The notes beneath the pieces were generated by a model, which saw nothing but the letters and a program-made list of their open reading frames with translations, had not been told where the DNA came from and searched no databases. 64,000 nt of DNA from sequence record PV764602.1; one strand, written 5' to 3'. Shown here piece by piece: positions 5,229 through 52,127 of this stretch (position 1 is its first letter; each line of letters starts with the position of its first letter). A program made the position numbers and the translations under genes.

Positions 5229-5251
5229 GGTGAACTTCCTTGACGGTTGAG

Positions 5252-5653: not shown

Positions 5654-5654
5654 G

Positions 5655-6050: not shown

Positions 6051-6092
6051 TTCCAGCTTCCTTGGTTGAAGATATTGAGATACAGGCGCTAC

Positions 6093-6425: not shown

Positions 6426-7198
6426 TCCTCGTAGGTCATGACTTGCGTGACGTAGCCCGGCCACGTCTTTTCAGTGGCGACGTTGAGGGCAGTTTCGTGC
6501 AAGTCGAACAACCACGGCTCAACATCGCCGAAGTCCTTACCGAAGTGTTCGATCTGGCCATAGGTGCCCGCGTATCGACCCGGCTCCCCATTCTCCAGTG
6601 CGACACGACGGATGATGCACCAGCGCGTAGGTTCGATGAAGGGTATACCCTCAGCTTCGGCCATGCCCTTCGCTTCTTCGACCGCTTCCTTAGCGGTGGC
6701 GTAACTGCCGAACCCGGTGTTGAACGGTTCATGCAGTCCCTCTTCATTTACAATGATGATGACGGCGAAGAAGCCCCGAATGCCGTGCGTCACAGTTGCA
6801 TATGCAGTGATGGGCGGTTCGTAGTCCGGGTAGTGCTCCTTCAACGCCTCAGCAATCGTGGCTTCGGTGTCGAACGTGTTGCTCAGTTCCTTCGGCAGTT
6901 CGTAGAACGTGGAGTAATCATGGTCATCCATGAAGCCCCCGAACTCGCGCGCATGGTCATCGTTGAGGATGATGAAGCGACCGACCAGTTCGTACTTGAG
7001 CTTGAGGACAGTGTGCACACCATTCTCAGCGTATTGCGATCGGACAGTGCTTGCACCCTTTCGCTCACGATCGGCTTGTTCTTCCGCAGCCTTGGCCGTG
7101 CGGTACAGGCCCGAGCAGTAGTCCTCGTAGTTGCAGCAGGTGCAGCCGGTGCCGTGGTGGATGGTGTAGCAGAAACCGACGGGTGCATGCTTGCTCAT
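6410..7198 (-). CDS. Hypothetical protein
   Basis: 262-aa ORF with GCTCC motif. Confidence 0.6.
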   Translation of the reverse strand: MSKHAPVGFCYTIHHGTGCTCCNYEDYCSGLYRTAKAAEEQADRERKGASTVRSQYAENGVHTVLKLKYELVGRFIILNDDHAREFGGFMDDHDYSTFYELPKELSNTFDTEATIAEALKEHYPDYEPPITAYATVTHGIRGFFAVIIIVNEEGLHEPFNTGFGSYATAKEAVEEAKGMAEAEGIPFIEPTRWCIIRRVALENGEPGRYAGTYGQIEHFGKDFGDVEPWLFDLHETALNVATEKTWPGYVTQVMTYEEWKKL

Positions 7199-7506
7199 GT
7201 TTCATCCTCAGTGCTGTAGGTGCGCCATGCGCTTTCGCGGGCGGGTGCGTAACGCAGATGCTTGACGGCGTAACGGTTTCCGTAGTGATCCGTCTTCCAC
7301 TCATCGGTGAACCCGATTTCACGAACCGCTGCTTGGTAGGTGTCCGGATCGTCCTCGTAGTAACCGTTGGTGTTGTCGATGCTGTGCCAGTGGGCAAACT
7401 TGCCACCGCACACGTTGCACTTGTTGGGATAGCTCGCGTTGTGCGTGTCCCAAATCATGTGGTGCCCGTTTTCGCACAGGCGTTCTTCACTTCCTCGATA
7501 GCCCAC
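7195..7506 (-). CDS. Hypothetical Zn-ribbon-like protein
   Basis: CENGH and CNVCG motifs. Confidence 0.55.
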   Translation of the reverse strand: MGYRGSEERLCENGHHMIWDTHNASYPNKCNVCGGKFAHWHSIDNTNGYYEDDPDTYQAAVREIGFTDEWKTDHYGNRYAVKHLRYAPARESAWRTYSTEDET

Positions 7507-7507
7507 G

Positions 7508-8077
7508 TCACTTCCTCTTGGCGTAGTAGCGATGCCCCTTGTGGGGGAATGCGTTGTGGCCGAACGGATGGATGGTGTCCAACTCGTAGCCGGAACTATG
7601 GCGATAGATGCGCGTCGTTTCGTGTGTCGAAGTGGTTTTCGTTACGCGGTCCACATACACACGTTGATCGTCCATCAATGCCTCGCGCACGATCTGGCGC
7701 ACTTGACGCAACGTGCGAACCTTGCGGTCGATGAGGATTTCACCGAAGACTTCATACACGCGACGGCGCTTGTACTTCGGACGGTTTCGGCTGAACGATA
7801 CTGCTTCCTTGAACGCTGCTTTCAACAGCGCGACCGAATCGCCGTGATGCTCCTGCGGCGACCAAAACTCAATGAAGCACCACCCGCCCTTCTCATCATA
7901 GCTTTGCAGGAAGGCGTGCGACTTTCGGTGCGCCTTGTAGTGAGGGCTCTCAATCCAGTTGTCCGTGACACTGGAACGAAGGGCAACCATTTGCTCCGGC
8001 GTGCCGTTCTCAACGACGACGCCCCAATTCTTGTCAGCGAACGGCTTGCAGTAGGTGAAGGTCGGGCGACGGCTCAT
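7508..8077 (-). CDS. Hypothetical protein
   Basis: ORF track, start placed at MSRRPT. Confidence 0.55.
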   Translation of the reverse strand: MSRRPTFTYCKPFADKNWGVVVENGTPEQMVALRSSVTDNWIESPHYKAHRKSHAFLQSYDEKGGWCFIEFWSPQEHHGDSVALLKAAFKEAVSFSRNRPKYKRRRVYEVFGEILIDRKVRTLRQVRQIVREALMDDQRVYVDRVTKTTSTHETTRIYRHSSGYELDTIHPFGHNAFPHKGHRYYAKRK

Positions 8078-8298
8078 CCTGTGAAACTCCTTTTCATCAA
8101 ATCGCGTGGGTTCGGATACTGCTGTTTCAACTTGTGCGTTCGCATAGCATCCCGATCCTGCCGGATGAGTTGCTTCGCTTTGTCTTTCACCGTCAGCTGC
8201 CAATCGCCCGCCGCACGCAACCCACCTTTCACGCTCAGGGATCGCAGCAGGGATTGTGTGGCGTTGGTGTTGGTGATTGCAACGATGGGGAGGATCAT
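8074..8298 (-). CDS. Hypothetical protein
   Basis: Start MILPIV with GAGGGA SD. Confidence 0.45.
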   Translation of the reverse strand: MILPIVAITNTNATQSLLRSLSVKGGLRAAGDWQLTVKDKAKQLIRQDRDAMRTHKLKQQYPNPRDLMKRSFTG

Positions 8299-9719: not shown

Positions 9720-10064
9720 TTACTTGATGATGAGCTTTTGATTGGAGCAGCAGTCCAACAATTGCTCGTACACTTCCGGTGTTACGTTGACACAGCCAGC
9801 GGTAATGCCTCGGCGGTCAGCAGGGTTGTCTGACTGGATGCGACGTTCCCGATGCTGTGCGTTGCCAAGTGTGTAGGTGCGGTGGATAGCAGACACGCCC
9901 TTGGCAGTGTGCCTGAACATGAGAACGTCGCCGCCGTATCCCGGCCAGTCCGTCTCAGCGTGCGTCATCTGAAACTCGCCGCGCGGAGTATCGGTTCCTA
10001 CTAAAGCAGGATGGCACTGACCCGCAAAGCAAATCAGCGCCAACGTCACGTCTACGATTACCAT
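9720..10064 (-). CDS. Minimal L,D-transpeptidase (YkuD) catalytic-domain protein
   Basis: LVGTDTPRGEF, SAIHRTY and ITAGCVNV carry the YkuD His...Gly-Cys signature. Confidence 0.75.
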   Translation of the reverse strand: MVIVDVTLALICFAGQCHPALVGTDTPRGEFQMTHAETDWPGYGGDVLMFRHTAKGVSAIHRTYTLGNAQHRERRIQSDNPADRRGITAGCVNVTPEVYEQLLDCCSNQKLIIK

Positions 10065-10080
10065 GATCCTTTCCTTGAAA

Positions 10081-10106
10081 GGAGGGGCAGCCTAAGCCAC
10101 CCCTCC
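10081..10106 (-). terminator. Hairpin or weak intrinsic terminator
   Basis: GGAGGGGTGGC-TTAG-GCTGCCCCTCC then TTTC on the minus strand. Confidence 0.5.
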
Positions 10107-10112
10107 GGTGAA

Positions 10113-11486
10113 TCAACCTTCGATCTTGCTGCGGATGATGTACTGCACCGGCTTCACTTCCTGCGGCAGTTCGCACAGGCGAAGCTGGATGGTAGTGACC
10201 ATGCGCTGATTGGCGCTCGACGTGCCCATGCCAGCCTGACCCCATTCCTGACTGCGACCACCGCCGCCCAGCGCAACGTTGCGGTTACCCGAAACACCAA
10301 CCACCGTGGTGAACATGGTGACCTGATGCCCGTAGTAGCGCGGGCCAGTCGGACCTTCAAAGGTCAGGTACGGCACCAAGTTACCATTGGCATCGGTGTA
10401 GGGCACCAGTTCCTGGGTGATGCCTTGGTCGATGCTCGACTTGATGAACAGGCCGTGGAAGGTTCCGTTGACTCGCTCAGTCACAACCTTTTGCAGCGGA
10501 CCACAGGCCGACGTTTCCTTGATGATGTTGCCAGTGGCGACATACGAGGAAGGAGTCAGCGGCACGACAGCTGGGATGCTCAGGGCCAGTGCGCGGTAGC
10601 TCGAATTGTTGGAAGCGTCAACGTGCGTGCTGCTGTTGCCACTGCCATCATTCGACATGCTGCTCGACTGCCCACCAACCTTGGTGCTGGTCGATTGGCC
10701 ACCGACATTGGTGGACTGACCAACCGCGTTGGTGTTGGCGCTGCTCTGGCCCTGCGAGGCCGAGTTCGCATTCTTGTTGCTGCTGTTACCGCTGCCGTCA
10801 TTCGACAGGCCGTTGATGCTGCTCTGGCCCAGCGCGTTGGTATTGTTGCCCGTGGTTGCCGAGTTGTTACCTCCGGTCAGCGCGTTCGCGTTGCCATTGG
10901 TATTGCTGCTCGACTGACCTTGGCCTTGCGATGCGGAACCGCCCTGACCACCCGCACCACCTGCACCACCAGCGCCGCCGTTGGCAGTGGTCGTGTTGTT
11001 CGACCCGTTGCCATTGCCCATGTTGCTGTTGGAACTGTTGCCGCCGTTGATGGCGTTGGCGTTGGAGGAATTGCCGCCCGTCATATCGCCCGTGCGGTTG
11101 CCACCATTCGACAGGGAGTTTCCGCCGCTGCTACTCGACGTGTTGCCAACCGAGGAACGGTTGTCGTTGTCGTTGTTGCTCAGGTTGCCTGTGGCCGAAC
11201 CGCCTGCGCCACCCTGAGCATGACCACCCTGCACCGTGTTGCCGCTTTGGTCAACCGTGTTACCGCTCTGCTGGAGGTTGTTCTCACCAGTGTTGCTGTT
11301 GCCCGATTGGTTCGATGCAGTCGAGTTGCCGATCTGCGTGGAGTTGGAATTGGTGTTGTCCGCCGTGGTGGACGTGTCACCCATGTTCTGATTGGAGCAG
11401 TTGACCGTACCTTCGGGGCACGGCGGGTTCTGCGCCAGTGCGGAGAACGGCAGGGACAGGGCCAATGCAAGAATGAGCTTATTCAT
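10113..11486 (-). CDS. Secreted Asn/Gly/Ser/Gln-rich low-complexity protein with globular C-terminal domain
   Basis: Signal peptide MNKLILALALSLPFSALA; ~270-aa N/G/S/T/Q tract; C-terminal domain with two Cys. Confidence 0.8.
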   Translation of the reverse strand: MNKLILALALSLPFSALAQNPPCPEGTVNCSNQNMGDTSTTADNTNSNSTQIGNSTASNQSGNSNTGENNLQQSGNTVDQSGNTVQGGHAQGGAGGSATGNLSNNDNDNRSSVGNTSSSSGGNSLSNGGNRTGDMTGGNSSNANAINGGNSSNSNMGNGNGSNNTTTANGGAGGAGGAGGQGGSASQGQGQSSSNTNGNANALTGGNNSATTGNNTNALGQSSINGLSNDGSGNSSNKNANSASQGQSSANTNAVGQSTNVGGQSTSTKVGGQSSSMSNDGSGNSSTHVDASNNSSYRALALSIPAVVPLTPSSYVATGNIIKETSACGPLQKVVTERVNGTFHGLFIKSSIDQGITQELVPYTDANGNLVPYLTFEGPTGPRYYGHQVTMFTTVVGVSGNRNVALGGGGRSQEWGQAGMGTSSANQRMVTTIQLRLCELPQEVKPVQYIIRSKIEG

Positions 11487-35385: not shown

Positions 35386-36513
35386 ATGCTCAAGTATGAC
35401 AACGGGCTGGAATTGGACGTTACCATTGGTGGCGTCCAGCTTCCTGACAATGAGTTCTCGTTTCACCACCTGTCCCTAGTCAGTGACACTCGGTATTTCT
35501 TGCCGATGATGTTCATGCAGTTCGCTGACCAAGGCGACATTCTTCGGAAGGCTGGCGTTACCCTGTTTGACGCCGTACCCATTGTCATTAGCTTGGGCAC
35601 TGGCGATCAGAAAAGGAACTACGAGTTCCGCCTCCACCGTCCTGAGCAAGTCACCAGCGGCAACCTGACCATCTACAAAATGAGCGGGTATCTAGATGCC
35701 CCCAAGTACCTAGCTGAGTCTCAGAACATTGGCTACACGGGTACTAGCTCTGAAATCATCAGTCAAATCGGTGAACGTAGCGGCCTCACGCCACAGGTTG
35801 AGGATACCACCGACAACCAACGATGGTGGCAGGCCAACCGCCGCAATGCTGAGTTCGTTCGCTACATGGCCCAGCATGGATACAAGTCAGATGATTCCCT
35901 CATGTGTACGGGTGTGCGCTTCGACCGCTCCTTGCGATACATGGACCTGAACGCCATCGAGCCGCGAGATATGTGGCTGAGTTACACAAAGATGGACCAA
36001 AACGTCGTTACAATCGTTGACCACCGATTTAACGATCCTATGGGTGGGAATAATTTGATTAGGGGATACAGGAGTCGCACGGTAGATCAGAAGGTCAACA
36101 CTCCTGACACCAACTACAACGACACCACCATCAATCCCCGTGCTTCTACCGTGAGCATGAACCTGGACCTACAATCGCAGATTCAGCGAGGCAAGGTCGA
36201 GTTCTCACCGCTGTACGCTCCGGGTCAGGTGCACGATAACTGGGCCAAGGCCCGCCACCAAAACCTGCGCGGTCGCTATCTCAACAATTCGATCTGCGTT
36301 GCGCTGACCACTAACCAATCTAATCTGGACCTGTTTGATAGTGTCAAGATTGACAGCAGCTTGTCGATCCGAGACAACACCATCGGCGATGGTCAGAACA
36401 ACAGTCGGGAAGGTCAGTACATTGTGGCAGGCAAGGAGATCATGCTTGTCGGTCGCAACTACGGCGAGAAGATCAAACTGATGCGCGGCGGTATGAACGG
36501 AGAGAGTCAATGA
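35386..36513 (+). CDS. Baseplate hub protein (gp27/gpD-like)
   Basis: Size and position between gp53-like and spike genes; WWQANRRNAEFVRYMA. Confidence 0.65.
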   Translation: MLKYDNGLELDVTIGGVQLPDNEFSFHHLSLVSDTRYFLPMMFMQFADQGDILRKAGVTLFDAVPIVISLGTGDQKRNYEFRLHRPEQVTSGNLTIYKMSGYLDAPKYLAESQNIGYTGTSSEIISQIGERSGLTPQVEDTTDNQRWWQANRRNAEFVRYMAQHGYKSDDSLMCTGVRFDRSLRYMDLNAIEPRDMWLSYTKMDQNVVTIVDHRFNDPMGGNNLIRGYRSRTVDQKVNTPDTNYNDTTINPRASTVSMNLDLQSQIQRGKVEFSPLYAPGQVHDNWAKARHQNLRGRYLNNSICVALTTNQSNLDLFDSVKIDSSLSIRDNTIGDGQNNSREGQYIVAGKEIMLVGRNYGEKIKLMRGGMNGESQ

Positions 36514-37247
36514 GTATCGGTATGGGCGTCCGTGAATCGGACAGCTACAAGGGCATTATTTTCTATGGCAAGGTAGTGGACAACAATGACCCCGAACAGC
36601 TACGGCGTGTACGTGTCCATATCCCCGAGGTCTACGGTGATACCCCTCCCGAGGAATTGCCGTGGGCCTTCCCCAAATGTCCTCCTAGCGGCACTGGCCA
36701 AAGTAGCACCTTCGGTAGCTACGGTGTGTTGGACGTAGACAGCGAAGTATGGGTGGAGTTCCAGCAAGGCGATCCCCACTTCCCTATGGTGATTGGCGTA
36801 GCCTTGCGCGCCGACCTTCGGAAGCAGACTGAGCTAGTCAACTATCCTCACCGCTACGGCCTTGACGATTCCAAGGGTAACTGGATCATCGTTGACAAGC
36901 TGACAGGCGACGTGGAGATTGGCCACTTCTCTGACACCCGTGTACGCATCGAGCCTAATGGTAACCTGCACATCACTTCGGTAGCCAATCAAACGATCAC
37001 GGTTGAGCAAAATCAAGAGACCGAAATCAAGGGTAACGCTACTGTGCAGGTGAAGGGTAACGTCAACGTTACCGTTAACGGCAATGCGGAAATGAAGGTC
37101 GATGGGGCTATGAAGGCTAACATCGGTCAGAACCTCCAAGCTACTGTGGGCGGTAGTGCCACTGCCCAGGTTACTGGCCCCGCCACCATCAATTCAGCAG
37201 TCAAGATTTCGCTCAACGCACCAACGGTAAGTATCAACGGAGCATAA
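36510..37247 (+). CDS. Central baseplate spike (gp5/gpV OB-fold plus beta-helix)
   Basis: GKVVDNNDPEQLRRVRVHIP, LPWAFP and VWVEFQQGDPHFP; 8-residue VxGN repeats. Confidence 0.88.
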   Translation: MSIGMGVRESDSYKGIIFYGKVVDNNDPEQLRRVRVHIPEVYGDTPPEELPWAFPKCPPSGTGQSSTFGSYGVLDVDSEVWVEFQQGDPHFPMVIGVALRADLRKQTELVNYPHRYGLDDSKGNWIIVDKLTGDVEIGHFSDTRVRIEPNGNLHITSVANQTITVEQNQETEIKGNATVQVKGNVNVTVNGNAEMKVDGAMKANIGQNLQATVGGSATAQVTGPATINSAVKISLNAPTVSINGA

Positions 37248-38847: not shown

Positions 38848-39789
38848 ATGCCTGTATCTAATCCACCTACCTTGTTGAGTGTCATTGCAGAGTTCGGAGG
38901 CCCTAACAATCTTGGGGCCTATTACCGCAAAGGTCCATACGTACCTGACGGTCCTCCGCAGAATGCCAACATCAGTGATACGCCGGGCGGTCTTCGTCTC
39001 AGTCAGTTTGCGGGTGCGGTCAAGTACAATCTCAGTGCGTCCCTGAATCGCACGACCGCCAACACCAGTGGTAGTGGCAACAGCCAGTCGGGACGTGTCC
39101 TAACTCCACAGCTGATTGTTTACCCCGTTAACGGCAGCGGCAACTACAGCTACTACTGGAACTACACCGCAGGCGTCCCTGTTAGCGGAAATACCAGTAG
39201 TACGTTCCAGCTGTACGCTGATCTCAACAATGGTCAGAACATTTCTGGCAACGGTAACTGCGTGGTTACCGATAACGTCACTGGTCAGAATGCGATCCCT
39301 AGCTTTACGTTCTACCTAAGCTGGACGTATGAACGCCCACCCACCTGTGTTGTCATGGAAGCATACCTGCACGATGGAAAGCAGGCAGGCATGTACAACT
39401 CCAACGATCCTCTGCTGTTGGTCGATCCATACGCAAGGACTTCGGAGACGCTGAACATCGTAGATGCGCAGACCTTCACCCGAGAGTGTGTGACCTTGGT
39501 TACTGCCAATGGCTCACGCCTAACGTGCTCCACCACTGCACCTATTCCAGTCAAAGCCGACTCGGAAACGCTGGTTCGTGCGGTGGATGCTCTAGGCCAC
39601 CACGTTGCTACTACCACACGCCCTAACGACGTGATCCCATCGGTCACTTGGGATAAGGTAGTGCGTGTGCTGCCTGCTGGTGAGCGTGCTGTCCGCAATA
39701 TCTACATCTACGACAAGTGCTTCTGGGCTTCGGATGACAATCGTTCGTTCATCCTCCATCACAACACGACTGGTAAGCAGATCATATGA
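38848..39789 (+). CDS. Adhesin-like tail protein with C-terminal Hint domain
   Basis: N-terminal attachment-type domain ending LRLSQFAGA; Hint from C (39346) to HHN (39765) followed by TTGKQII. Confidence 0.65.
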   Translation: MPVSNPPTLLSVIAEFGGPNNLGAYYRKGPYVPDGPPQNANISDTPGGLRLSQFAGAVKYNLSASLNRTTANTSGSGNSQSGRVLTPQLIVYPVNGSGNYSYYWNYTAGVPVSGNTSSTFQLYADLNNGQNISGNGNCVVTDNVTGQNAIPSFTFYLSWTYERPPTCVVMEAYLHDGKQAGMYNSNDPLLLVDPYARTSETLNIVDAQTFTRECVTLVTANGSRLTCSTTAPIPVKADSETLVRAVDALGHHVATTTRPNDVIPSVTWDKVVRVLPAGERAVRNIYIYDKCFWASDDNRSFILHHNTTGKQII

Positions 39790-40391
39790 TCGTCAACAAA
39801 GAACCACGCACCGCTACTCCGATGAATTGGTTGCCTACGTACTACCTCAGTCGGATGTTTAACGCAGAAGAGTGCGCCACCATCATCAAGGAGTCAGAGG
39901 ACTCCGGACTGTTTGTGCAAGGCCGCACCATTGGCGACAATAACGTGACTGTAACAGAGCAAGGCCGTCAGGTGGCCATTATCCGACTGGCTGGAGGTAC
40001 GCTGTACGAAATGATGCGCCAACGGATACTGGAACGGCTGCCTGACCTAAACTCCTGCTATCAGTTTGAACTGTTCGGCGCAGATGAAGTCTTCAAGGAA
40101 ATCCATATCCTGAAGTACGTGGAAGGTAATTTCCACGGTGAACATTTGGACCTCGCCGGTTACGAGGAAATGTGCAACCGGAAGCTCAGCCTCATCGTCC
40201 AGTTGAATCCGGATTACGAGGGCGGTGAATTAGTCCTCTACAACTCTTATCCCGAGAAACCTCTGACCAATAGCAAGCAGGCTGGCGACGCAGTGGTGTT
40301 CCCTGCATGGATGCCGCACGAAGTAAGACCTGTTGACTACGGGACTAGATACGTTCTTGTGGTTTGGTTGCGAGGCCCTAAATTTAGATAG
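39786..40391 (+). CDS. 2OG-Fe(II) oxygenase (prolyl-hydroxylase/PKHD-like)
   Basis: HLD...RKLS...YEGGEL...FPAWMPHEV...TRY...WLRGPKFR: complete HxD..H triad and 2OG-binding Arg. Confidence 0.9.
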   Translation: MIVNKEPRTATPMNWLPTYYLSRMFNAEECATIIKESEDSGLFVQGRTIGDNNVTVTEQGRQVAIIRLAGGTLYEMMRQRILERLPDLNSCYQFELFGADEVFKEIHILKYVEGNFHGEHLDLAGYEEMCNRKLSLIVQLNPDYEGGELVLYNSYPEKPLTNSKQAGDAVVFPAWMPHEVRPVDYGTRYVLVVWLRGPKFR

Positions 40392-40401
40392 GGAGGTACT
40401 C

Positions 40402-40989
40402 ATGGCCGTATCAAACCCACCAACATTGGTGAGCGTGCGTAACGAATTCGGTGGCAACGGAAATCTCCGTGCCTACACACGAGGCGGTGGCCTTGTTCCA
40501 GATGGGCCTGCGCAGAATGCGAACATCAGCAAAACTCCGGATGGTTTGCGGCTTAGTCAATTTGCAGGAGCAACTAAAATCACTGCACAGTTGACCGACA
40601 TTTATGCGCAGCAGTCCTACTACGGACAATCGGGTCAAGACAACACTGCTTCTGCCACCATCCAGTTTAGTACCGATGGCAACATCTACTACACATGGGG
40701 TATGGGAGCTTTGCAGACGTACCGATGGTTGGCTGGCGGTAATGCAAGTGATTTTGACGTAGAAGGATTTAATCAGCAGATCGCAGGTAACGGTCAAACC
40801 TCGGGCACGATGAATCGTCAGAATTTGGGTGGTTCTCCCCGATGGTCATGTTCCGCTGCAACCCGATTTGGTTTTGTTGATTCTTCCATGTCATTTGGCT
40901 GCCGAATCTACCAAGCGGGTACTGGTAACGTTATCGCTACAGCGAATTTCAGTATTTATGCCGCCGCCTCAGATGGTAGCATCGGATAG
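40402..40989 (+). CDS. Adhesin-like tail protein, paralogue without Hint
   Basis: First ~59 aa closely match 38848..39789; the remainder is unrelated. Confidence 0.65.
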   Translation: MAVSNPPTLVSVRNEFGGNGNLRAYTRGGGLVPDGPAQNANISKTPDGLRLSQFAGATKITAQLTDIYAQQSYYGQSGQDNTASATIQFSTDGNIYYTWGMGALQTYRWLAGGNASDFDVEGFNQQIAGNGQTSGTMNRQNLGGSPRWSCSAATRFGFVDSSMSFGCRIYQAGTGNVIATANFSIYAAASDGSIG

Positions 40990-42153: not shown

Positions 42154-42338
42154 TACCGAAAATAGGGCCAAAATAGGCCCACAGCACCCTCTACCCACAG
42201 GGCGCCAAATTTAGAGGCTCCAGCTTCCATCTACGACCCCAATCCTTGCGTCAAAACGCATAGTTGGGGCGTAGATTTTGGCTACATTTTCCACTCCCCA
42301 ACCCTCATTTTCCTATGGCCACTGACCGGAATTCAACC

Positions 42339-44096
42339 ATGACAACTGTAACCGCGTTGTCCAATATCCGCCCTGACTTCGATGACATTGCAGCACAGCT
42401 GGGATCGAGTCTGACGCGCAAGGCGAACTGGGCTCCGCTGCTTCCTACTCAGACTGCAAGCCTCTTGATTGAAGGCGTGGCCGCCGCCACTGCGTTCCTG
42501 CAAACCGGTGTGCAGAACAGCTTTGAAGAAACGTTCCCTCAGACCGCCCGTATGCCTTCGAGCCTGCGGGCGTCTGCGCGTCGGCTCGGTGTCCGTCTGA
42601 CGCGCAAGTCCCCTGCACAGACTCGGGTACGGCTCACGCGAGCCACCGCAGCCACGTCCGTCCTGATCCCTGAGTTCTCGGCCTTCCAAGCGCCGGGTGT
42701 GTCTCTGTTCAACCGCTCTGCCATACTGTTCCCCGTCGGTACCCTCTCCGCTGAATTCGACTTGTACGAAGGCTTTATCACTCAGGTTTCGTACACGGGT
42801 CAAGGTGCTGACAGTCAGATGATCGTTGTATCTGTCCCCGGCTTCACCATCAGCAACATGGACGTGCGGGTCACTGTCAGTGGCCGTCCGCTGCAAGTGG
42901 TGACTGATGGCATCTGGCACTACCCCATCACGAACAGTGGCGATCCTAACTACGTGGTATCGGACAACACGCTGCCTACGGGCGAGCTTCTGCTTGAGTT
43001 CGGTAACACTCAGTTCGGCATGATCCCTCAGCGTGGTGCGCAGATTCTTGTGTCCTATGCTGTGACCAATGGTACCTCCGGCAACAACGTACAGTTTGAG
43101 AATCAGCGCATCACGTACTCGGCCAACGGTGTTGAGTTCACTGGCAGCGCGCTTACTCCACTCACCGGAGGTACTGACGAACTTGACGCAGAGCAGTACC
43201 GCGATAGTCCGTTGATCTACGCGTCCTACGAGCGCGCGGTTGCTATTCCAGACATGCCTGCTATTGCTACGAAGTATCCCGGCGTTGTCGATGCCATCTT
43301 CCTTGGTCAGAAGGACATTGCTCCGAATCTCAAGGAATTCATGAACGTTGTCTACACCTACGTTCTGATGGATACGGGTTCTCAGATTTCTGCTACGCAG
43401 TACACGGACTTCCTCAAGTGGTGGCAGCCTCGCTCGATGCCCCTTGAGTACGTCCGCCAAACCGCCAAGCAAATTGCAGTAGACGTTGCAGGCACCATCT
43501 ACATCACGGGTCAGGGCGATCCGGATTCCATCTTGGCCAAGGCGCGCGCAGCAGTTGCCAAACTGTTCACTGCACGCCAAGGTTACTTGGGTCGCGATCT
43601 GTACGTGGACGACCTTATTGACTCCATCCGTACTTCGGACCCTTACGTTGACCACGTTACCCTGACTTCACCCACCGCTGACGTTATCTGTAAGATCAAC
43701 GCACCGCAGGCCCCTACTGTTACTCCGGCTACTGGCGGTACGCTCCCCAACGGTACGTACATCTATTCGGTGTCTGCTGTCTCCAATCTCAGCCCTGTGC
43801 AAGAAACGTTCGCTTCGGTGAATGGTGCGGTGACGCTGACGGGAACGAACAACGCCGCACGTATCAAGTGGAATGCAGTGGCAGGTGCTGTGCAATACAA
43901 GGTGTACGGGCGCACTGCTTCCCAAGAAATGTTCCTGCTTGCCACGGTCAGCGCATCTTCTGCGCTTGAATTCTTGGACACGGGTTCTGTTACTACTGGC
44001 GCTGCTGTCAACAAGATCAACACTGCGGGTATCTCTTACGTTACCCTCAACAATACGAACTTGCAGGTGGCGTTCACTGATCGAGTAGGTGTCTGA
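42339..44096 (+). CDS. Baseplate J/gp6-like wedge protein with FN3-like insertion
   Basis: TARMPSSLRASARRLG, GGTDELDAEQYR and ERAVAIPD; alternative start at 42315. Confidence 0.85.
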   Translation: MTTVTALSNIRPDFDDIAAQLGSSLTRKANWAPLLPTQTASLLIEGVAAATAFLQTGVQNSFEETFPQTARMPSSLRASARRLGVRLTRKSPAQTRVRLTRATAATSVLIPEFSAFQAPGVSLFNRSAILFPVGTLSAEFDLYEGFITQVSYTGQGADSQMIVVSVPGFTISNMDVRVTVSGRPLQVVTDGIWHYPITNSGDPNYVVSDNTLPTGELLLEFGNTQFGMIPQRGAQILVSYAVTNGTSGNNVQFENQRITYSANGVEFTGSALTPLTGGTDELDAEQYRDSPLIYASYERAVAIPDMPAIATKYPGVVDAIFLGQKDIAPNLKEFMNVVYTYVLMDTGSQISATQYTDFLKWWQPRSMPLEYVRQTAKQIAVDVAGTIYITGQGDPDSILAKARAAVAKLFTARQGYLGRDLYVDDLIDSIRTSDPYVDHVTLTSPTADVICKINAPQAPTVTPATGGTLPNGTYIYSVSAVSNLSPVQETFASVNGAVTLTGTNNAARIKWNAVAGAVQYKVYGRTASQEMFLLATVSASSALEFLDTGSVTTGAAVNKINTAGISYVTLNNTNLQVAFTDRVGV

Positions 44097-45712
44097 TGAC
44101 TATCTATAACGGCGATGATCCGAATACCTTGTTGCCTAATGCTTCATCCATCAACCCACTAATCACCTACGGCTTCCATCAAGTCTATGGCAAGATGGAC
44201 GGGAATGGCGTTGTTGTGGATACGATGGGCATCATGCTGCCAGAAGGTTTCCGTGATCTTGACGTGTGGCGAGACTTCGCTGATAGCGTCGATGAGGTGA
44301 TGAACAGCGAGATTGCAACGCAGATCGAAAGCCTGATGAGCACGAACGACCCGTATGCGTCTTCGGTGAATCCTGCTATTGACCGCCGTACCCTCCTGTA
44401 CCTCATTGGTGCAATCGGATTCAAGTACAAGCAAAACGACGTGTTTGACATTGATGATTTGAAGCGGTTCGTTCGGCATACTCCGCAATTTTGGGGTGAG
44501 AAGGGCAACCGCTTCTTCATTCAGTACATGAGCTATGTCGTTAACGCCCAGCTTCAAATGCAATACCTGTGGACGCAGGACTACAAGGTGTTCGTACCCG
44601 AGGGTAGTCCGCTGATTGGTCGCCCTGTGTGGGAGTCCGCAGTAAATGCCACTGCCAACGTGGTCCCATTCGGTACAGGCGATGGGGCTCAGACTGTGTT
44701 TCCCCTGATGGTGATGAACTCCACCATCGACAGCGTTTCGGGGACCCCTACGATCTACCGCGTTGACTGGGCAGGACAAACGCGCCTATACAACACACCA
44801 CGCACCAACCGCATTAGGCGAAGTGTGGAAATTGGTAGCTCAGCATGGACCAATAGCAGTCCTACCAATCTGATAGTGCAGACCACTTCGGCCTTGGCAC
44901 CCGACGGTAGCGCGACGGCCTCCGTGCTCAAGCCCATGACTACGGGAGCCAATGCAGCTTCGCTGCTCGATGGTAGCGCGGTGACGCCCGGTCCTGTGAC
45001 TTGTAGCGTTTACCAGTCTTCTGAGGGACTGGCCGCAGGGCAAAAAGTTCGATACGCGCTATGGAGTGTGAATTCCAGCAATGTCACCACTCTAGTTGGT
45101 CAGACAGATTTGGAGTGGACGGGCACTCAGATGCGCGTGGCGGCGTATAGCGGCGTTGCTTCTAGCGTCCTACAGTCTTTGGGTGACGGCTGGTACCGGA
45201 TTGAGTATACGGGTACAACTGACGTTGGTGCACGCCTTTCAATCCAGCCGGGCCTAACCCACACCAATCCTGTTACGGTGTGGGGTGCTCAATTGGAGCA
45301 GGGTAGTTCCGCTACTCGCCTCATCAAGACTTATGGCGTTGAAGTAACCACCACGGATTTCGCCTTCACTAACAGTAATCGGAGTATCACCCTGTCGTCA
45401 CCTCTACCTGTAGGCGCAAGCCTTAGCTGGAGCGGAACGTACAATCAGGCAGGCACTTGGTACCCAACAAGTCACGTATACATCGTCTATGACGTTGATA
45501 AGTTCCGAGGCTCAGTCTCGAATAATTTCAATAGTCAAGACAGCTTGGCTGCATTTTTCTACACCATCGCTCCAATTGAACTGGTGATCCAGTCCTTCGT
45601 TCTCAACGTCAACTTTGATCCTACGATTCTACAGTTGGCGGGTGACGTGCAGATTAGCGTGTATACGCCGATGGAAGTGGAAGCTATTACTCCGATGAAC
45701 ACTAGGGCTTGA
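44096..45712 (+). CDS. Baseplate wedge protein (gpI/gp7-like) with inserted carbohydrate-binding-like domain
   Basis: FWGEKG and WYPTSHV flank GTGDGAQTVF and VWGAQLEQG inserts. Confidence 0.7.
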   Translation: MTIYNGDDPNTLLPNASSINPLITYGFHQVYGKMDGNGVVVDTMGIMLPEGFRDLDVWRDFADSVDEVMNSEIATQIESLMSTNDPYASSVNPAIDRRTLLYLIGAIGFKYKQNDVFDIDDLKRFVRHTPQFWGEKGNRFFIQYMSYVVNAQLQMQYLWTQDYKVFVPEGSPLIGRPVWESAVNATANVVPFGTGDGAQTVFPLMVMNSTIDSVSGTPTIYRVDWAGQTRLYNTPRTNRIRRSVEIGSSAWTNSSPTNLIVQTTSALAPDGSATASVLKPMTTGANAASLLDGSAVTPGPVTCSVYQSSEGLAAGQKVRYALWSVNSSNVTTLVGQTDLEWTGTQMRVAAYSGVASSVLQSLGDGWYRIEYTGTTDVGARLSIQPGLTHTNPVTVWGAQLEQGSSATRLIKTYGVEVTTTDFAFTNSNRSITLSSPLPVGASLSWSGTYNQAGTWYPTSHVYIVYDVDKFRGSVSNNFNSQDSLAAFFYTIAPIELVIQSFVLNVNFDPTILQLAGDVQISVYTPMEVEAITPMNTRA

Positions 45713-46857
45713 CCATGACCCAACTTTACATCACTGAGGCAGGCATTGCCGCTGCCAACTCGTCCAGTCCTAACGGACCGATGATTCAGATCGTGTCGTT
45801 CGCTCTAGGCAGCGATTACGGATACACCCCTCCGCCGTCCTCTGTGTATCCGGGCGCTAACAGCGTCGTTACTTCGCAGAGTGCTCTACGGGGTACGGTA
45901 CGCTATCCAGTAGGCAATCAGCGTGCTGTGCCCAGTAACTACCACCTTGCTGCTGATGGCATCACAGGCGTGTTCACGCTGGTAGTTGGTCTGGACGTGG
46001 GCGACTTCTCGTTTGGTGAAGTCGCTCTCTACATGCCCGGCAACGTCATGTTCGGTATCGCAGTTCTTCCGCAACTGCAAACCAAACTGACCACTACGCA
46101 GAGTCAGACGGGCAACATCATCAACATGACGGTCAGTTTCCAGCTGAACGGCGTCAAGCCCAACATCACTGTGCAAAATGTCACGACCGCACTAGCAGAT
46201 ATTCGCACGGTCGGTACCGTTGACGTGATGAGCCCTCCGTCGGCCAGCCCTACCAACAATGCCATTTCTTTGCAGGTTGATGAATACAACCGCAGCAATT
46301 TGATGACGAAGCGTGACACCGACCTGTGGCAGTCACAACAGTATGACTGGGTTGTGCATGAAGGTGTTGTGCAGGTATCGGGCGATAAGACTCTGAGTGA
46401 TGCGACTCTGGCTACGTCGCCTATCTACGTTGCACCGGGCCGCTACATTCTGCAATTCACCAGTGGTGCGTTGAAGGGTCAGGTTCGCCAAATCACGGCC
46501 TTCCCTGTATGGGCTGCGAGTGTAGTGCGTCGTGTGGGTGACGTTGTTCAGCCGACCAACAATCCCAACGTTCTGCTTAGGTGCACCACCGCTGGTACTT
46601 CGGGCACTGCCCAGCCGTCGTGGAACACTGGCGCTTCGGGTGCCACCACTACTGATGGCACGGCGGTGTGGACGTATACGCCCAACCGGGACTCCCCGAA
46701 TACCACGCTTTCGTGGGCAGGCTCTACCTCGTCCAATGCGCTGAACGGCGTTACTTACACCGTGTATCGTGCTGCATCCTTCAGTGGCATTCGTCAGTAC
46801 ATCGGCGAATACATGCTGGACGCAATGCCCATCAACTATTACAATCAACACCACTGA
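45709..46857 (+). CDS. Proximal tail fibre/baseplate-anchored fibre (gpH-like N-terminus)
   Basis: LYITEAGIAAA, GDFSFGEVALY; CBM-like WAAS...RCTTAGTSG module. Confidence 0.7.
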   Translation: MTMTQLYITEAGIAAANSSSPNGPMIQIVSFALGSDYGYTPPPSSVYPGANSVVTSQSALRGTVRYPVGNQRAVPSNYHLAADGITGVFTLVVGLDVGDFSFGEVALYMPGNVMFGIAVLPQLQTKLTTTQSQTGNIINMTVSFQLNGVKPNITVQNVTTALADIRTVGTVDVMSPPSASPTNNAISLQVDEYNRSNLMTKRDTDLWQSQQYDWVVHEGVVQVSGDKTLSDATLATSPIYVAPGRYILQFTSGALKGQVRQITAFPVWAASVVRRVGDVVQPTNNPNVLLRCTTAGTSGTAQPSWNTGASGATTTDGTAVWTYTPNRDSPNTTLSWAGSTSSNALNGVTYTVYRAASFSGIRQYIGEYMLDAMPINYYNQHH

Positions 46858-47227: not shown

Positions 47228-49513
47228 ATGATTACCCATCAGGATACACTGTTCTCCAACATCCTATACGGAAATAATTGGAGTGCAGCTACCTACCAAG
47301 CCGCAAATCGGTTCACCATCCAAGGTGACAAGCGAACTTCGTATGAGGTAGGTACCCAGGTTCAGATTCTCACGTCTGCTGTAGCTACTATGCAGTACAG
47401 CTACGTTAGTGCAGTTACGTTCGCCTCCAACGTTACTACGGTGACGGTGAGCGACGGTCTATTCGCTTCGGGTCAGAAGATCAACGTTCGTGCATCGCCG
47501 TTTGGTGCCAACAACATGCCCCTCGGCCGACGCTTCAAAGAAATCAGCGTGTTCGGTGCGAACGGCCTGACGATCTCGAATGCGAGTCCGAAGTTCACCC
47601 TGTTCGTTGAAGGCGTTGGTGCGGGCAAGGTCAACACGTTCACTTTCCAGCCGGGCTCGGATGGTATCTCGTTCAAGGTTGGCCGTGATGCAATCGGTCT
47701 CGATGCCATGCGCATTGACGCCACTTCGACTGCCATCACCAAGGTGACGTTGTTCTCGCCCCTGACCTTTGGCGCGACGTATACGGGCGCCCTGACTTCG
47801 CTGACCGACCTTCTGACGATTGGTCAATACGCACTGACCTATTCGGCTACGGGTTCTTCGACCGGCAGCAATCGTCTGTATATCTCCGGCCCTAATGGCG
47901 GCGAGTTCACCGTTGGTCCTACCAACGATGCTCAGGTATTCCGTCGTATTCGACTGCGTGCTACTGACGTTGTGGTCGAGAACAATCCCGGCGGTTCCTC
48001 GCAAGCAGGCTCGATCTGGCATAGCCTCAACTTCGATCCTGACACCCGTGTTACCAAGGGTCAGAATGGTTCTTGGATGGATTCGGCTTACACTGCGATC
48101 AACAACCTTAACAACGCTCAGGGGTATTTCAACCAGTGGGCATCGGGCGCCGCACAGGCTCCTGTTGCAGGTTCGACGGGTGTTGTGCAAACCATGCACA
48201 GTGCGGGTGGCAACAACTTTAACCCTGTGGCTGGTGCTTCGCTGGTGCAGACGGCTTATGTCACCAATGGCACCGCACCTGCCCTGTATGTGCGACGCAA
48301 CGTAGGTGCTTCGGGTTGGTCTGCATGGACTAAGCTGTATACCCAAGCAGATTTCTCGCTTGGCGATTACGTCAAGATCGCAGGCGGTGATACCATCCAG
48401 TCCCCGATCACTGTACGTACTGCCTTGTCCGTTGGCACGACTGCGGATGCAACGTCCACCCTGAACTTCGGTACCTCGGCCAGTCCCAACGGTCCTGCTG
48501 CTACCATTTCTGTTACGGGCGGCGCAGCGACCACGGGTCGTGGTGCAATGACTATCAACGCGCAGTCCATCGCGCTGCCTGCACTGAACGTCAACGGTAC
48601 GATGAACGTTTCGGGCGCTGCTTCGATGGCGGGCCCACTGACCATCACTACTGGCTCCATACTGCTGGGTAACGGCACGTATGGGGAATCGCGTATTAGC
48701 AATACCTTCGACGACTGGTATTTGTATTCCAGTCCTACGGGACTTGGCTGGTACAGTATCAGTAAGGGTAGTGCTTTCTCACTGGACAAGAACAGCAAGG
48801 CGTTCACGTTCAATGGTGCGGGTACCATCAACGGTCAGACTACCATCAATGGTGGTCTGAACGTGGCGAGTGGTAGCGGTATCATCACTTCGGGCAACGT
48901 TGTTGGTGCCAACGGCAACTTCTCCAATGACGTGTTTGCTCCGGGCGCTTTCCGTGGTGCTCGCCTGCACATTTACGCAGGCTGCATTGCCTACGGTCAG
49001 GGCTTCCTGCCTAGCTGGAACGACTACGGTGATGGCGCAACGGTCCTGACTAACGCACGCGGCGGTGGTACGGGCGGTTTCAAGTTCCGTCAGATGAATA
49101 GTGACGGTGGTGGTCAGGTTTTCCTTGCCTTCATCAACCCGAACGGTACCATCGGTTCGGCGTCGGACGAACGCATGAAGGAATTCGGTAAGGTACTCGA
49201 CCTGTCTGACGCTCTTCGGTTCATCCGTGAGCAGCGAGTCAAGCATATCAAGTGGAAGCACACCGGCGAGGAGGATATTGCGTTTGGTGCGCAGAGCATC
49301 TTCAAGACCACTAGGTTCCTGGCCCACTATGACAAGGGTGCTGACTTCTGGCAGCTGTACTACCCGAAGGTCGCTCTGTATCATCACGAAGCTCTCTTCC
49401 ATATCCTTGAAGTGCAGAACAATCACGAAGCCGACATTCAGATCCTGATTCGCAAGAACGAAAATCTGGAAGAGGAAGTGAAGCAGCTGCGCGAACGGTT
49501 GGATTCTCTCTAA
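47228..49513 (+). CDS. Long tail fibre with C-terminal Peptidase S74 intramolecular chaperone
   Basis: G/S/T/N-rich shaft, WSAWTKL, SASDERMK cleavage motif and terminal coiled coil. Confidence 0.85.
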   Translation: MITHQDTLFSNILYGNNWSAATYQAANRFTIQGDKRTSYEVGTQVQILTSAVATMQYSYVSAVTFASNVTTVTVSDGLFASGQKINVRASPFGANNMPLGRRFKEISVFGANGLTISNASPKFTLFVEGVGAGKVNTFTFQPGSDGISFKVGRDAIGLDAMRIDATSTAITKVTLFSPLTFGATYTGALTSLTDLLTIGQYALTYSATGSSTGSNRLYISGPNGGEFTVGPTNDAQVFRRIRLRATDVVVENNPGGSSQAGSIWHSLNFDPDTRVTKGQNGSWMDSAYTAINNLNNAQGYFNQWASGAAQAPVAGSTGVVQTMHSAGGNNFNPVAGASLVQTAYVTNGTAPALYVRRNVGASGWSAWTKLYTQADFSLGDYVKIAGGDTIQSPITVRTALSVGTTADATSTLNFGTSASPNGPAATISVTGGAATTGRGAMTINAQSIALPALNVNGTMNVSGAASMAGPLTITTGSILLGNGTYGESRISNTFDDWYLYSSPTGLGWYSISKGSAFSLDKNSKAFTFNGAGTINGQTTINGGLNVASGSGIITSGNVVGANGNFSNDVFAPGAFRGARLHIYAGCIAYGQGFLPSWNDYGDGATVLTNARGGGTGGFKFRQMNSDGGGQVFLAFINPNGTIGSASDERMKEFGKVLDLSDALRFIREQRVKHIKWKHTGEEDIAFGAQSIFKTTRFLAHYDKGADFWQLYYPKVALYHHEALFHILEVQNNHEADIQILIRKNENLEEEVKQLRERLDSL

Positions 49514-49520: not shown

Positions 49521-49538
49521 GGGCACAGGGACGTGCTC
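49521..49538 (+). promoter_or_regulatory. CsrA/RsmA-type binding hairpin
   Basis: GGGCAC-AGGGAC-GTGCTC; ACAGGGACGT matches (A/U)CANGGANG(U/A). Confidence 0.6.
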
Positions 49539-49556
49539 CCTTTTTAGGTAGAGGCT

Positions 49557-50948
49557 ATGTGGATCACCCCTCAGAATCAAACTCTTGATGACACGTTCGA
49601 TCCATACTTTCCGGGTACAACTCGGTGGTATGGTTACACCGGCATCCTCATCAACAATACGCAAGACACCTACGATCGGTACGCTCCTTTGCAGTATGGC
49701 AGGCAAGCTCCATCCACGGCGATCCTTGCGCAGAATCAGGTAGACCTGAATCAGATTTACGCAGCCCGAGGTACAGCCGGCTACCTGCAAGGTATCTCTA
49801 TCCCAAATTGCTACGTGGGCTGCTCTGGCGTTACCATCAACGATCTTCTCGCTGCTCGATGCACCATCATCATCAAGAACGACGGTACGTGGCAGCAGTG
49901 GTTCTATTCCACCAACTACAAGACGGATAGCCCGGGTGCATATGCACCTCCTAATCGTGGCATCCCTCGAACCGAAACCAACTTCAGCAACGGACGCATG
50001 AACGCCGCCGGTAACTGGGCACAGATTCCGTTCGCTGGTGTGGGTAACAACTACGAGACTTTCTGCCACGCTCCTTGGGCTCCATACGAAAGCAAGAACC
50101 CACCTGATCTAGATTGGGGTACTGCCGATCACTATAATCGGTATGATGCTGCACTCATCAACTATATCTGGCACAACTTTAAGGGCCAAGGACAGTTCGG
50201 TAGTGCTAGTGATCCATACGTGGTGCAGAACACTACACAGAACCCTAATGAAGACATTCCAGATGGTCGGGTATATCGCATCGACCGCGATATTCGGTTC
50301 ACCCTTGGCTTGACTGCACAGGGACGCAACAACGTTCGTTGGAACTACGATGACAACGGTGCTCTGTCATGGTACAACCGAGCCAACTTTTCGGTGTACA
50401 TTCAGACACCCGGCGGCGGTCAGCGTGTAGGTGCCACCTGCCTTATGACCAATGAGATTCGTTGGAATGCGTGGAATTGGACGGGTGGTAGTGTCGGCGG
50501 CGGTGGTGGCGGTGGTGGCGGTGGTTGCGTTGCTGCTACCAGCTATGTTGACTTCCAAAAGACCGCAGGCACTGTTGAGGCAGGCGACTACCTCATGGGT
50601 ATGACGGATGATCTGCAATTTATGGAGCTACACGTCCTGAGTGTGCGTCGTCAAGTGCAACCGTGTGTCCGACTCTACTCAAAGAGTGGCGTCACCCTTG
50701 TGTGCTCAAAGTCCACGCCGCTGACCCTACAGAACGGAGATTGCGTGCTGGCAGGCGAAGCACGAGCAGGTATCAAGCTTCCGGTACGATTCTTCGCGGC
50801 TGATCCTGAGTGGGAAACCATCGTCAAGATCGAGGAGGTTGGCAACCGGGAAGTGATGCTCATCAACTGCGGTGGACAGAGCTATGCTGCCGGTGAGTTG
50901 CCGGGCCGCTATATCTACACCCACAACAACAACCAGCAGAAGATGTGA
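49557..50948 (+). CDS. Fibre-tip adhesin-like protein with Gly10 linker and C-terminal Hint domain
   Basis: Aromatic/Asn-rich body; G10-C start of Hint at 50526; THN at 50919-50927 followed by NNQQKM. Confidence 0.7.
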   Translation: MWITPQNQTLDDTFDPYFPGTTRWYGYTGILINNTQDTYDRYAPLQYGRQAPSTAILAQNQVDLNQIYAARGTAGYLQGISIPNCYVGCSGVTINDLLAARCTIIIKNDGTWQQWFYSTNYKTDSPGAYAPPNRGIPRTETNFSNGRMNAAGNWAQIPFAGVGNNYETFCHAPWAPYESKNPPDLDWGTADHYNRYDAALINYIWHNFKGQGQFGSASDPYVVQNTTQNPNEDIPDGRVYRIDRDIRFTLGLTAQGRNNVRWNYDDNGALSWYNRANFSVYIQTPGGGQRVGATCLMTNEIRWNAWNWTGGSVGGGGGGGGGGCVAATSYVDFQKTAGTVEAGDYLMGMTDDLQFMELHVLSVRRQVQPCVRLYSKSGVTLVCSKSTPLTLQNGDCVLAGEARAGIKLPVRFFAADPEWETIVKIEEVGNREVMLINCGGQSYAAGELPGRYIYTHNNNQQKM

Positions 50949-51367
50949 TGATTGGTTCTGACCAACTCTCAGAAGTAGGTGTACCTGTCGGAGAGCTCTC
51001 CATTGGGAGGACTCTCGACGTATATGCGGTGGACGATCTACACTCGGTCATCCGCCTGAAAGGAACCGTCTCAAATCGGGTCCTGCGCAGTGCAGAAGTA
51101 GTAACCATCACAACTGCCTCCGGCGCTTCCGTTGTGGTGGCTGCCCAAAGTCGCCTCCCTGTCTATAGCGGACAGACAGCGCTGGCTAAGAATGTTGGTG
51201 CCAACATGATTGCTGTGATGGCCCCTAATGGCGCTTTTCGGTGGGAGCGGGTTGCCACCATCGAGGCTGGTACTGAGGCCGTAGTGGACCTCAAGTGTGA
51301 AGGCTACATAGTAGCCGGTAACGATCCTAAAACCGGGCTAATCTTGGTGTCTGGATCGCTGCCGTGA
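50948..51367 (+). CDS. Stand-alone catalytically dead Hint-like protein
   Basis: TGATG-coupled; aligns by eye to the upstream Hint (VVTITTASGASVVV, WERVATIE); C1 and HN are absent. Confidence 0.55.
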   Translation: MIGSDQLSEVGVPVGELSIGRTLDVYAVDDLHSVIRLKGTVSNRVLRSAEVVTITTASGASVVVAAQSRLPVYSGQTALAKNVGANMIAVMAPNGAFRWERVATIEAGTEAVVDLKCEGYIVAGNDPKTGLILVSGSLP

Positions 51368-52124: not shown

Positions 52125-52127
52125 TTC

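Follow-up and report, generated by a model that had tools for sequence, protein, structure and literature searches.

We analysed a window of 64,000 nucleotides whose bases 47000-53000 are 100% identical to sequence record PV764602.1, Xanthomonas phage PhiXhv-15, and in which the tail module closes with two plus-strand genes, here called ORF-A (open reading frame A; 49557..50948) and ORF-B (50948..51367). Both bear the label 'hypothetical protein' in GenBank. We propose that ORF-A, a protein of 463 amino acids (aa), ends in a Hint (Hedgehog/intein) domain of the bacterial intein-like (BIL) kind that would remove itself, and that the 139-aa ORF-B is a free-standing, catalytically dead member of the same domain family that may assist ORF-A during assembly. 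While we hold this explanation as a whole with moderate confidence, its parts differ in strength: autoprocessing of ORF-A appears probable from its sequence features, the assignment of ORF-B as a dead paralogue of the family is very likely, and the joint action of ORF-B with ORF-A as a non-catalytic assembly partner, the weakest step, is put forward tentatively.

ORF-A is composed of an N-terminal module, a variable middle domain, a linker of ten glycines, the Hint domain and a tail of six residues. The Hint domain comprises the 134 residues from Cys324 to Asn457 (50526..50927, +) and is recognized by AlphaFold2 modelling, Foldseek and a family profile (E 9e-64). An earlier, sequence-only reading of the window had placed its start right after ten glycines with the first cysteine at 50526, and this is indeed the case: the codons of Gly314-Gly323 fill 50496..50525 (+), the linker ends at the predicted scissile Gly323-Cys324 bond, and the codon of Cys324 is the TGC at 50526..50528. 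The same reading was right about the other catalytic positions. Block B (aa 383-391; 50703..50729, +) reads Cys383-Ser-Lys-Ser-Thr387-Pro388 and contains no histidine, with the Thr387-Pro388 pair kept and Thr390 at the position usually held by His. The domain closes with Thr455-His456-Asn457, and the residue at +1 is Asn458 instead of a Cys, Ser or Thr nucleophile. What follows His-Asn is a six-residue tail (50928..50945, +) that includes Lys462 and is disordered in the model. As the +1 nucleophile is absent and there is almost no C-extein, classical splicing is unlikely, and we rejected a canonical (class 1) intein for ORF-A given an Asn at +1, six residues thereafter and N-side partners that are unrelated, variable tail proteins. 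Rather, with Cys1 and His-Asn kept and both the block-B His and the +1 nucleophile missing family-wide, cleavage, or ligation to a non-standard nucleophile, is the natural reading, as had been suggested from the letters.

Scans of ORF-A, its Hint piece and ORF-B with Pfam, NCBIfam and PHROG returned no match to a Hint model. As no library model sees the domain in either protein, we turned to structure to test the fold. For ORF-A, an AlphaFold2 model calculated from an alignment of 8 sequences is confident for residues 322-457 only (predicted local distance difference test, pLDDT, 70-94). When this model was compared to the PDB with Foldseek, the first 50 matches were all inteins, BIL or Hedgehog domains. 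The best was the gp41-1 intein (E 2e-7, template modelling score, TM, 0.81); others included the NpuDnaB intein (TM 0.80), the Hedgehog autoprocessing domain (1at0; TM 0.77), the Clostridium thermocellum BIL domain 2lwy (TM 0.76) and Tetrahymena BUBL BIL2 (6y75, 6tmm; TM 0.64-0.69). Profile searches of the PDB, which the sequence-only reading had proposed as a check, likewise put inteins first for both proteins, namely gp41-1 for the ORF-A domain (E 0.004) and NpuDnaB for ORF-B (E 0.002). Relative to its counterparts in phages PhiXhv-12 and PhiXhv-16, ORF-A has a ratio of nonsynonymous to synonymous polymorphism (pN/pS) of 0.03, by which it is under strong purifying selection.

The N-terminal module of ORF-A (about aa 10-120; 49584..49916, +) matches phrog_11610 (E 4.7e-10). 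It also opens the 444-aa Hint-bearing proteins of phages RTH11 (E 1e-18) and LucasX, and on its own it constitutes a 218-aa protein directly 3' of the fibre gene in Xanthomonas phage Rb1; given this distribution, we consider it a fibre-associated element. PDB profile and phage tblastn searches with the N-domain matched nothing beyond the Rb1 module, and for the middle domain (about aa 120-313) no relatives were detected outside the clade.

The Hint domain of ORF-A is one of many. A profile built from six ORF-A-type domains and searched against 1.84 billion representative proteins retrieved 944 clusters at E<=1e-3, 484 of them at E<=1e-10. The proteins behind the best 150 matches vary in length from about 90 to 3394 residues; with few exceptions, no more than a few residues separate the domain from the C-terminus. 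Across 156 aligned domains, residue 1 is Cys in 120, the rest being a few Ser and, for the greater part, gaps such as truncated sequences would leave. The block-B columns for Ser, Thr and Pro are kept in 152, 147 and 153 domains, respectively, the column that usually holds the block-B His is Thr in 130, and a Trp column is kept in 148. The terminal dipeptide is nearly invariant (His in 155/156, Asn in 154/156) and is followed by a tail of 3-12 residues, 3-8 in most members. The first tail residue is mostly aliphatic, Pro or Lys, and Cys, Ser or Thr in 10 of 141 cases. All 141 short tails contain a lysine, at a background Lys frequency of 2.5% in the family proteins; in 104 of them this lysine is penultimate and in 14 it closes the tail, a position most often taken by Pro (55/141). 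On the other side of the domain, glycine makes up 49% of the 12 residues preceding residue 1. Judged by these sequences, the family is large, has so far gone undescribed and is linked to the tail, baseplate and fibre proteins of phages; a Gly-rich linker precedes its domain.

Its N-side partners include PKD repeats, a Phage-tail_3 / GTA (gene transfer agent) 'megatron'-like baseplate protein with a carbohydrate-binding module (CBM), and a further protein annotated at its source as 'predicted phage tail protein'. Cultured phages that carry the domain are XacN1 (ORF231), RTH11, LucasX and Stenotrophomonas phage DLP_6. In addition, a hand-made degenerate DNA pattern covering the last two family motifs was run on IMG/VR contigs and bacterial genomes. 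At least 25 of 30 IMG/VR matches were confirmed as family domains, ending proteins of 183-1820 aa, while among the bacterial matches listed 8/120 were true at a domain threshold of 1e-3 and most arose by chance; bacterial carriers include Sphingomonas, Allosphingosinicella, Ahrensia and Microbulbifer. The family is found mainly in phages and in prophage-like regions of Alpha- and Gammaproteobacteria. In DLP_6, which has two matching places by tblastn, the gene of an 1824-aa 'VlrC protein' with a Hint domain of the family at its end (973..6447 of locus L046) adjoins another gene of that name (6447..8114).

Six members (P0020, P0050, P0122, P0134, P0118 and P0047) have two Hint domains in tandem, with the second Cys 4-5 residues past the first His-Asn and a Lys within the gap; in P0047 the first copy is degenerate. 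Scans of 30 family members against Pfam, NCBIfam and PHROG gave no match to a Hint model within the cut-off. At the relaxed Pfam threshold of E<=10, 20 members yielded a single weak match to PT-HINT (PF07591; E 0.063), and this model matched neither the ORF-A domain at E<=10 nor any of 10 full-length members. A literature search turned up no paper on Hint domains that end phage tail proteins, and the XacN1 and LucasX publications, together with the XacN1 supplement, report nothing at the protein level about their Hint-bearing proteins. The domain is best called a distinct subfamily of the Hint/BIL kind, whose phage-tail niche and terminal lysine signature, as read from its members, appear to be new.

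As for ORF-B, its ATG at 50948 shares the A with the TGA stop codon of ORF-A, so that the TGATG overlap read from the sequence holds, with one shared base and the same start in GenBank. The Hint-like fold of its product, named in advance as one point on which the sequence-only reading would stand or fall, was recovered as well: when the AlphaFold2 model of ORF-B, built on an alignment of four sequences, was compared to the PDB with Foldseek, the top 47 matches were all inteins, Hedgehog or BIL2 domains (TM 0.6-0.65). In a direct comparison with the Hint domain of ORF-A, hhalign returned a probability of 85% (E 7e-6). With the broad family profile, ORF-B scores E 5.8e-12 and its orthologues range from 4e-8 to 9e-8, and in the reverse search an ORF-B profile matches many family domains; these reciprocal matches argue that ORF-B is a member of the family rather than a mere bearer of the Hint fold. 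The profile of the ORF-A clade alone scores ORF-B less well (E 2.7e-4) than the broad one, which points to an old paralogue and not to a recent copy of the 3' end of ORF-A.

An alignment of ORF-B to the family profile shows that the N-terminal block is absent, that Ala/Gln/Ser/Arg replace block B, and that hydrophobic residues and a Ser stand where His-Asn is expected, a pattern shared by three further orthologues. The sequence-only reading was hence correct in that both the first cysteine and His-Asn are lost, yet a detail has to be amended, as the gapless alignment places Val-Ser, and not SG, opposite His-Asn. Positions that support the fold are retained, among them a Trp and, close to the C-terminus, an Ala-Gly pair. 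Among BFVD predicted structures, S5WB90 (Pseudomonas phage PaBG, 123 aa), A0A2Z3EFP0 (172 aa) and A0A1C3NFC5 (153 aa) resemble ORF-B at TM 0.5-0.6 and, going by these models, may be other free-standing Hint-like phage proteins.

A word-indexed homologue search with ORF-B found only ORF-B itself, and its orthologues were recovered through synteny. The pair exists in four lineages, namely PhiXhv-15, L002, L003-L005 and L173, and is limited to these, which share the N-domain of ORF-A. In L002, L003-L005 and L173, the orthologues of ORF-A are 57%, 51% and 43% identical to it, and those of ORF-B 41%, 31% and 37%. The ORF-B orthologues measure 137-139 aa, with 18 columns invariant across the four lineages, and their starts overlap the stop of ORF-A by 1 or 4 bases or lie within 4 bases of it. 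As the ORF-B start overlaps or abuts the ORF-A stop, this arrangement suggests that the two genes are translationally coupled. We also considered a fusion of the two by frameshifting: the ORF-B frame is open from 50897, yet no slippery heptamer occurs in the final 50 bases of ORF-A, and we rejected this candidate as unsupported. ORF-B probably originated by fission of a tandem Hint-Hint protein, of which it would represent the second domain, since such tandem members exist, one of them with a degenerate copy.

No pseudo-Hint partner was found beside the other members examined (XacN1-type, RTH11, LucasX and the confirmed IMG/VR loci). At XacN1-type loci, the Hint-bearing gene is followed by a 55-aa and then a 226-aa gene, and in RTH11 and LucasX the slot of ORF-B is taken by a tail assembly chaperone of phrog_1158. 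The partnerless members argue against a place for the pseudo-Hint in the general mechanism. ORF-B had no match in PHROG at E<=0.01, and the 225-aa gene 3' of ORF-B showed no similarity to Tfa.

Directly 5' of ORF-A lies the gene of a 761-aa long tail fibre (47228..49513, +), known from the ORF list and its translation and with a pN/pS of 0.02 against PhiXhv-12 and PhiXhv-16. S74 domains are C-terminal intramolecular chaperones of phage fibres and spikes which, by means of a protease with a Ser-Lys dyad, remove themselves after assembly; to our knowledge, self-cleaving C-terminal modules on phage fibres have so far been essentially S74 chaperones only. The fibre of the window probably ends in a chaperone of this type, with an S74-like autoproteolytic region at 49163..49510 (+) that runs from Ser646 to Lys651 and on into a helical tail. 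The S74 label that the sequence-only reading gave to the fibre is less secure than its other observations: PF13884 matches the protein of the window below threshold (E 0.047; 14.4 bits at a cut-off of 22), yet the same model matches one fibre orthologue at E 2.9e-5, and three orthologues all keep Ser646, Asp647 and Lys651. The L173 fibre orthologue has a weak precomputed S74 match, and a sequence search of the PDB with the fibre C-terminus gave no match to S74. A terminator-like hairpin followed by a T-run, found by a consensus scan, lies between the fibre gene and ORF-A (49521..49546, +); it is weakly supported, as terminator-like sites are no more numerous in the region than in shuffled sequences.

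Taken together, we envisage that, once ORF-A is folded or assembled, Cys324 would attack the carbonyl of Gly323 in an N-to-S acyl shift, and that the thioester would be resolved without a side-chain nucleophile at +1, be it by water, by the amine freed on cyclisation of Asn457 or by the tail lysine. The Hint domain would then depart and the mature ORF-A would end in poly-glycine. ORF-A would be a distal tail-fibre-associated protein whose last 140 residues form a disposable, self-removing module, comparable to S74 on the fibre, and ORF-B, which sits in the slot of the tail-fibre assembly chaperone of related phages, would be its non-catalytic partner. A removable self-processing module is suggested by Cys or Ser at residue 1, the Gly-rich linker and the constant terminal position on otherwise unrelated proteins. 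Besides, neither His-Asn nor the obligatory lysine is explained by simple hydrolysis, which suggests that the tail takes part, with its lysine acting either as acceptor or as a catalytic stand-in for the missing block-B His.

On the other hand, several points weigh against this proposal. The block-B His normally assists the first acyl shift in Hint domains, and since it is absent family-wide, the chemistry may differ or be slow. Mere N-terminal cleavage would leave the conservation of His-Asn and of the Lys-bearing tail unexplained. The role of ORF-B is deduced from synteny and the coupling of stop and start alone, and most family members do without such a partner; moreover, only one of its five AlphaFold2 models is confident (pLDDT 76.9; predicted TM 0.75), and pN/pS is uninformative for ORF-B, which is identical in PhiXhv-12 and PhiXhv-16. 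Finally, the label 'adhesin' given to ORF-A by the sequence-only reading is a reasonable guess from gene position and no more than positional, because the N-domain has a pLDDT below 50 and no recognizable homologue.

Other explanations have to be weighed against the same observations. ORF-A might be a covalent coupler, in which the Gly323-Cys324 thioester would be resolved by the epsilon-amine of a lysine to yield an isopeptide bond as in BUBL BIL2, the acceptor being either its own tail lysine, which Asn cyclisation would release from the Hint domain, or a lysine on another tail component such as the fibre. This would account for a lysine in every short tail (141/141 against the 2.5% background) and for the retention of His-Asn ahead of a tail of only 3-8 residues; the Gly-rich N-side junction recalls ubiquitin-like C-termini, the spacer of 4-5 residues that separates the first His-Asn from the next Cys in the tandem members includes a Lys, and BUBL BIL2, for which a Lys isopeptide has been reported (PMC8616854), is among the structural matches. 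However, the lysine could instead stand in catalytically or electrostatically for the block-B His, or cap the structure. There is also no obvious benefit in joining a six-residue peptide to the protein's own C-terminus, and ORF-B is a poor acceptor: the only Lys conserved throughout three orthologues is replaced by Asn in the fourth, for which reason we rejected it in that role. We therefore consider the coupler unlikely, and Lys-directed ligation by the Hint domain, taken by itself, no better than improbable. It is likewise rather improbable that the whole family is, instead of a protease, a ligation device that would pass the Gly-Cys thioester on to the obligatory lysine of the tail or to one of a neighbouring tail component, forming an isopeptide independently of adenosine triphosphate (ATP), with ORF-B, in the PhiXhv-15 clade, docking on ORF-A and timing or directing the reaction.

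Alternatively, ORF-A may be processed and ORF-B may have nothing to do with it, being a split-off and decayed second Hint domain with another structural or host-interaction role or one drifting to loss. Every other Hint-bearing member examined lacks a partner, all catalytic motifs of ORF-B are gone, and fission of a gene with tandem Hint domains would readily account for its origin, all of which would fit. Yet ORF-B orthologues keep their length of 137-139 aa, their fold and 18 invariant positions across lineages with 30-41% identity, and in every lineage the start overlaps or abuts the preceding stop and the same type of ORF-A is adjacent. Such conservation makes drift to loss unlikely and favours a link to ORF-A, so that we give the unrelated ORF-B little credence. 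The least probable explanation to us, and a distinctly improbable one, is that no processing takes place and that the Hint-like domain stays in the virion in a binding or structural role, its Cys, His-Asn and Lys serving folding or ligand binding. It could draw on the family-wide absence of the block-B His, on the dead Hint fold of ORF-B that evidently persists as a stable protein, and on the invisibility of the family to the Pfam Hint models, but would have to explain why exactly those residues that define Hint autoprocessing (Cys or Ser at position 1, His-Asn at the end) are nearly invariant, why a flexible Gly-rich linker stands just ahead of residue 1, and why the domain takes the extreme C-terminal position on otherwise unrelated proteins, which is the pattern of a removable module.

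The window encodes a second protein of the family, which the sequence-only reading had overlooked, as it had the size of the family and the obligatory lysine of its tails. The product of 38848..39789 (+), 313 aa long, carries a Hint domain at its C-terminus (family profile E 7.8e-31) that extends from Cys167 (39346) to Asn306 (39765) and is followed by a Lys-containing tail of 7 aa; Ala takes the place of Thr in its block B. The gene sits in the baseplate module, 3' of a gp5-like spike gene (36510..37247). From sequence, PhiXhv-15 thus has two apparently active Hint copies and one dead copy. A further gene, 40333..40989 (+), encodes a 218-aa protein that lacks a Hint domain but is paralogous to the N-domain of the 38848..39789 product (phmmer E 1e-22), and PhiXhv-15 therefore has that N-domain both with and without Hint. 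Between the two, a gene for a 2-oxoglutarate-Fe(II) (2OG-Fe(II)) oxygenase (39786..40391, +; PF13640, E 2e-15) overlaps the stop of the 38848..39789 gene. An unrelated IMG/VR contig (L035) has two oxygenase homologues (4881..5456 and 779..1378, -) in a tail-like module and also carries two adjacent Hint-bearing genes. The presence of a 2OG-Fe(II) oxygenase beside Hint genes may be a recurrent association, e.g. for the hydroxylation of tail proteins.

PhiXhv-15 is a virulent jumbo myovirus of 228.7 kb that infects X. hortorum pv. vitians (PMC13340338). Over bases 47000-53000 of the window, PhiXhv-12, PhiXhv-16, Ep026 and Ep032 are 98% identical to it. Ep032 and Ep026 have equal bit scores, with 97.9% identity over the 6 kb, and the host genera in their names differ: OQ603353.1 and OQ603359.1 are 'Erwinia phage Ep032' and 'Xanthomonas phage Ep026', both unannotated and Ep026 flagged UNVERIFIED. 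Upstream of the long fibre gene, the tail module contains a baseplate wedge gene (42264..44096), then a 538-aa tail protein, and a tail-collar fibre gene (45709..46857), then a 115-aa fibre-like protein. On the 3' side of ORF-B follow, in this order, the 225-aa protein gene, whose product is of unknown function, two glycoside-hydrolase lysis genes and the spanins. In L002, the closest metagenomic relative, the lysis genes are followed by a 279-aa gene (9881..10720) with a weak precomputed match to the ADP-ribosyltransferase model PF03496; the window of PhiXhv-15 has no gene of that size at the matching place.

The family described here may represent a second, chemically different self-processing module of phage tails, in which a Cys-thioester Hint stands beside S74, and one that is widespread and was missed by domain libraries. 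With no block-B His, a terminal His-Asn and an obligatory tail Lys, it amounts to a natural experiment in Hint chemistry and could widen the view of intein-like reactions that lack a side-chain +1 nucleophile. The annotation of receptor-binding proteins would benefit as well, since processing would leave the Gly linker as the end of the mature protein. ORF-B, as a rare free-standing pseudo-Hint coupled to an apparently active member, provides a handle on the reuse of this fold; a free-standing dead paralogue is unusual, yet confined to a single clade of jumbo phages. Should the ligation reading be true, the family would be the phage counterpart of BUBL-type conjugation during tail assembly.

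Among known systems, the ORF-A domain comes closest to the A-type BIL domains, which form an N-terminal thioester, undergo C-terminal cleavage by Asn cyclisation and mainly give cleavage products or products of ligation to a freed amine (Amitai et al. 2003, Dassa et al. 2004, as summarised in PMC4031507 and PMC7765530). A-type BILs are defined by Cys1, a His-Asn end, the absence of a +1 nucleophile and their occurrence in variable, non-conserved proteins (PMC4031507, PMC7765530), and all four features are found in the ORF-A domain, with its variable host protein. Both share the Hint fold (2lwy, TM 0.76) and the expected outcome of cleavage or free-amine ligation. However, the ORF-A family escapes PF07591, has its block-B His replaced and is associated with phage tails, and whereas A-type BILs are followed by a C-terminal protein domain, its members end in a Lys-bearing tail of 3-8 residues at the extreme C-terminus. 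B-type BILs lack an intein-like C-terminal motif, i.e. His-Asn (PMC4031507). Assignment to B-type BIL / Hint_2 (PF13403) was rejected, as there is no Pfam match and His-Asn is present in the ORF-A domain.

BUBL BIL2 employs a Lys amine as acceptor and forms an isopeptide with a Gly-terminated N-side partner (PMC8616854). The family resembles it (TM 0.64-0.69) in its Gly-rich junction and downstream Lys, but BUBL BIL2 has ubiquitin-like flanks and keeps the catalytic block-B His, while the Lys of the family lies in a short end tail and its isopeptide is hypothetical. Hedgehog Hog (1at0, TM 0.77) is likewise a C-terminal Hint domain, on a secreted or assembled protein, in which cleavage of a Gly-Cys junction via a thioester frees the N-terminal domain. 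Unlike Hog, ORF-A has no sterol-recognition region, ends in His-Asn and a six-residue tail and lacks the block-B His; with no match to PF01079 and just these six residues after the Hint module, an assignment to Hog was discarded. The S74 chaperones are alike in being disposable C-terminal modules on phage tail fibres, yet fold and chemistry are unrelated, a Ser-Lys dyad protease in one case and a Cys thioester in the other. Lastly, ORF-B resembles the phrog_1158 Tfa proteins in its small size (139 aa), its coupled start and its slot after a phrog_11610-type Hint protein, but differs from them in that it shows no sequence similarity and has a Hint fold, its own role as a chaperone being putative.

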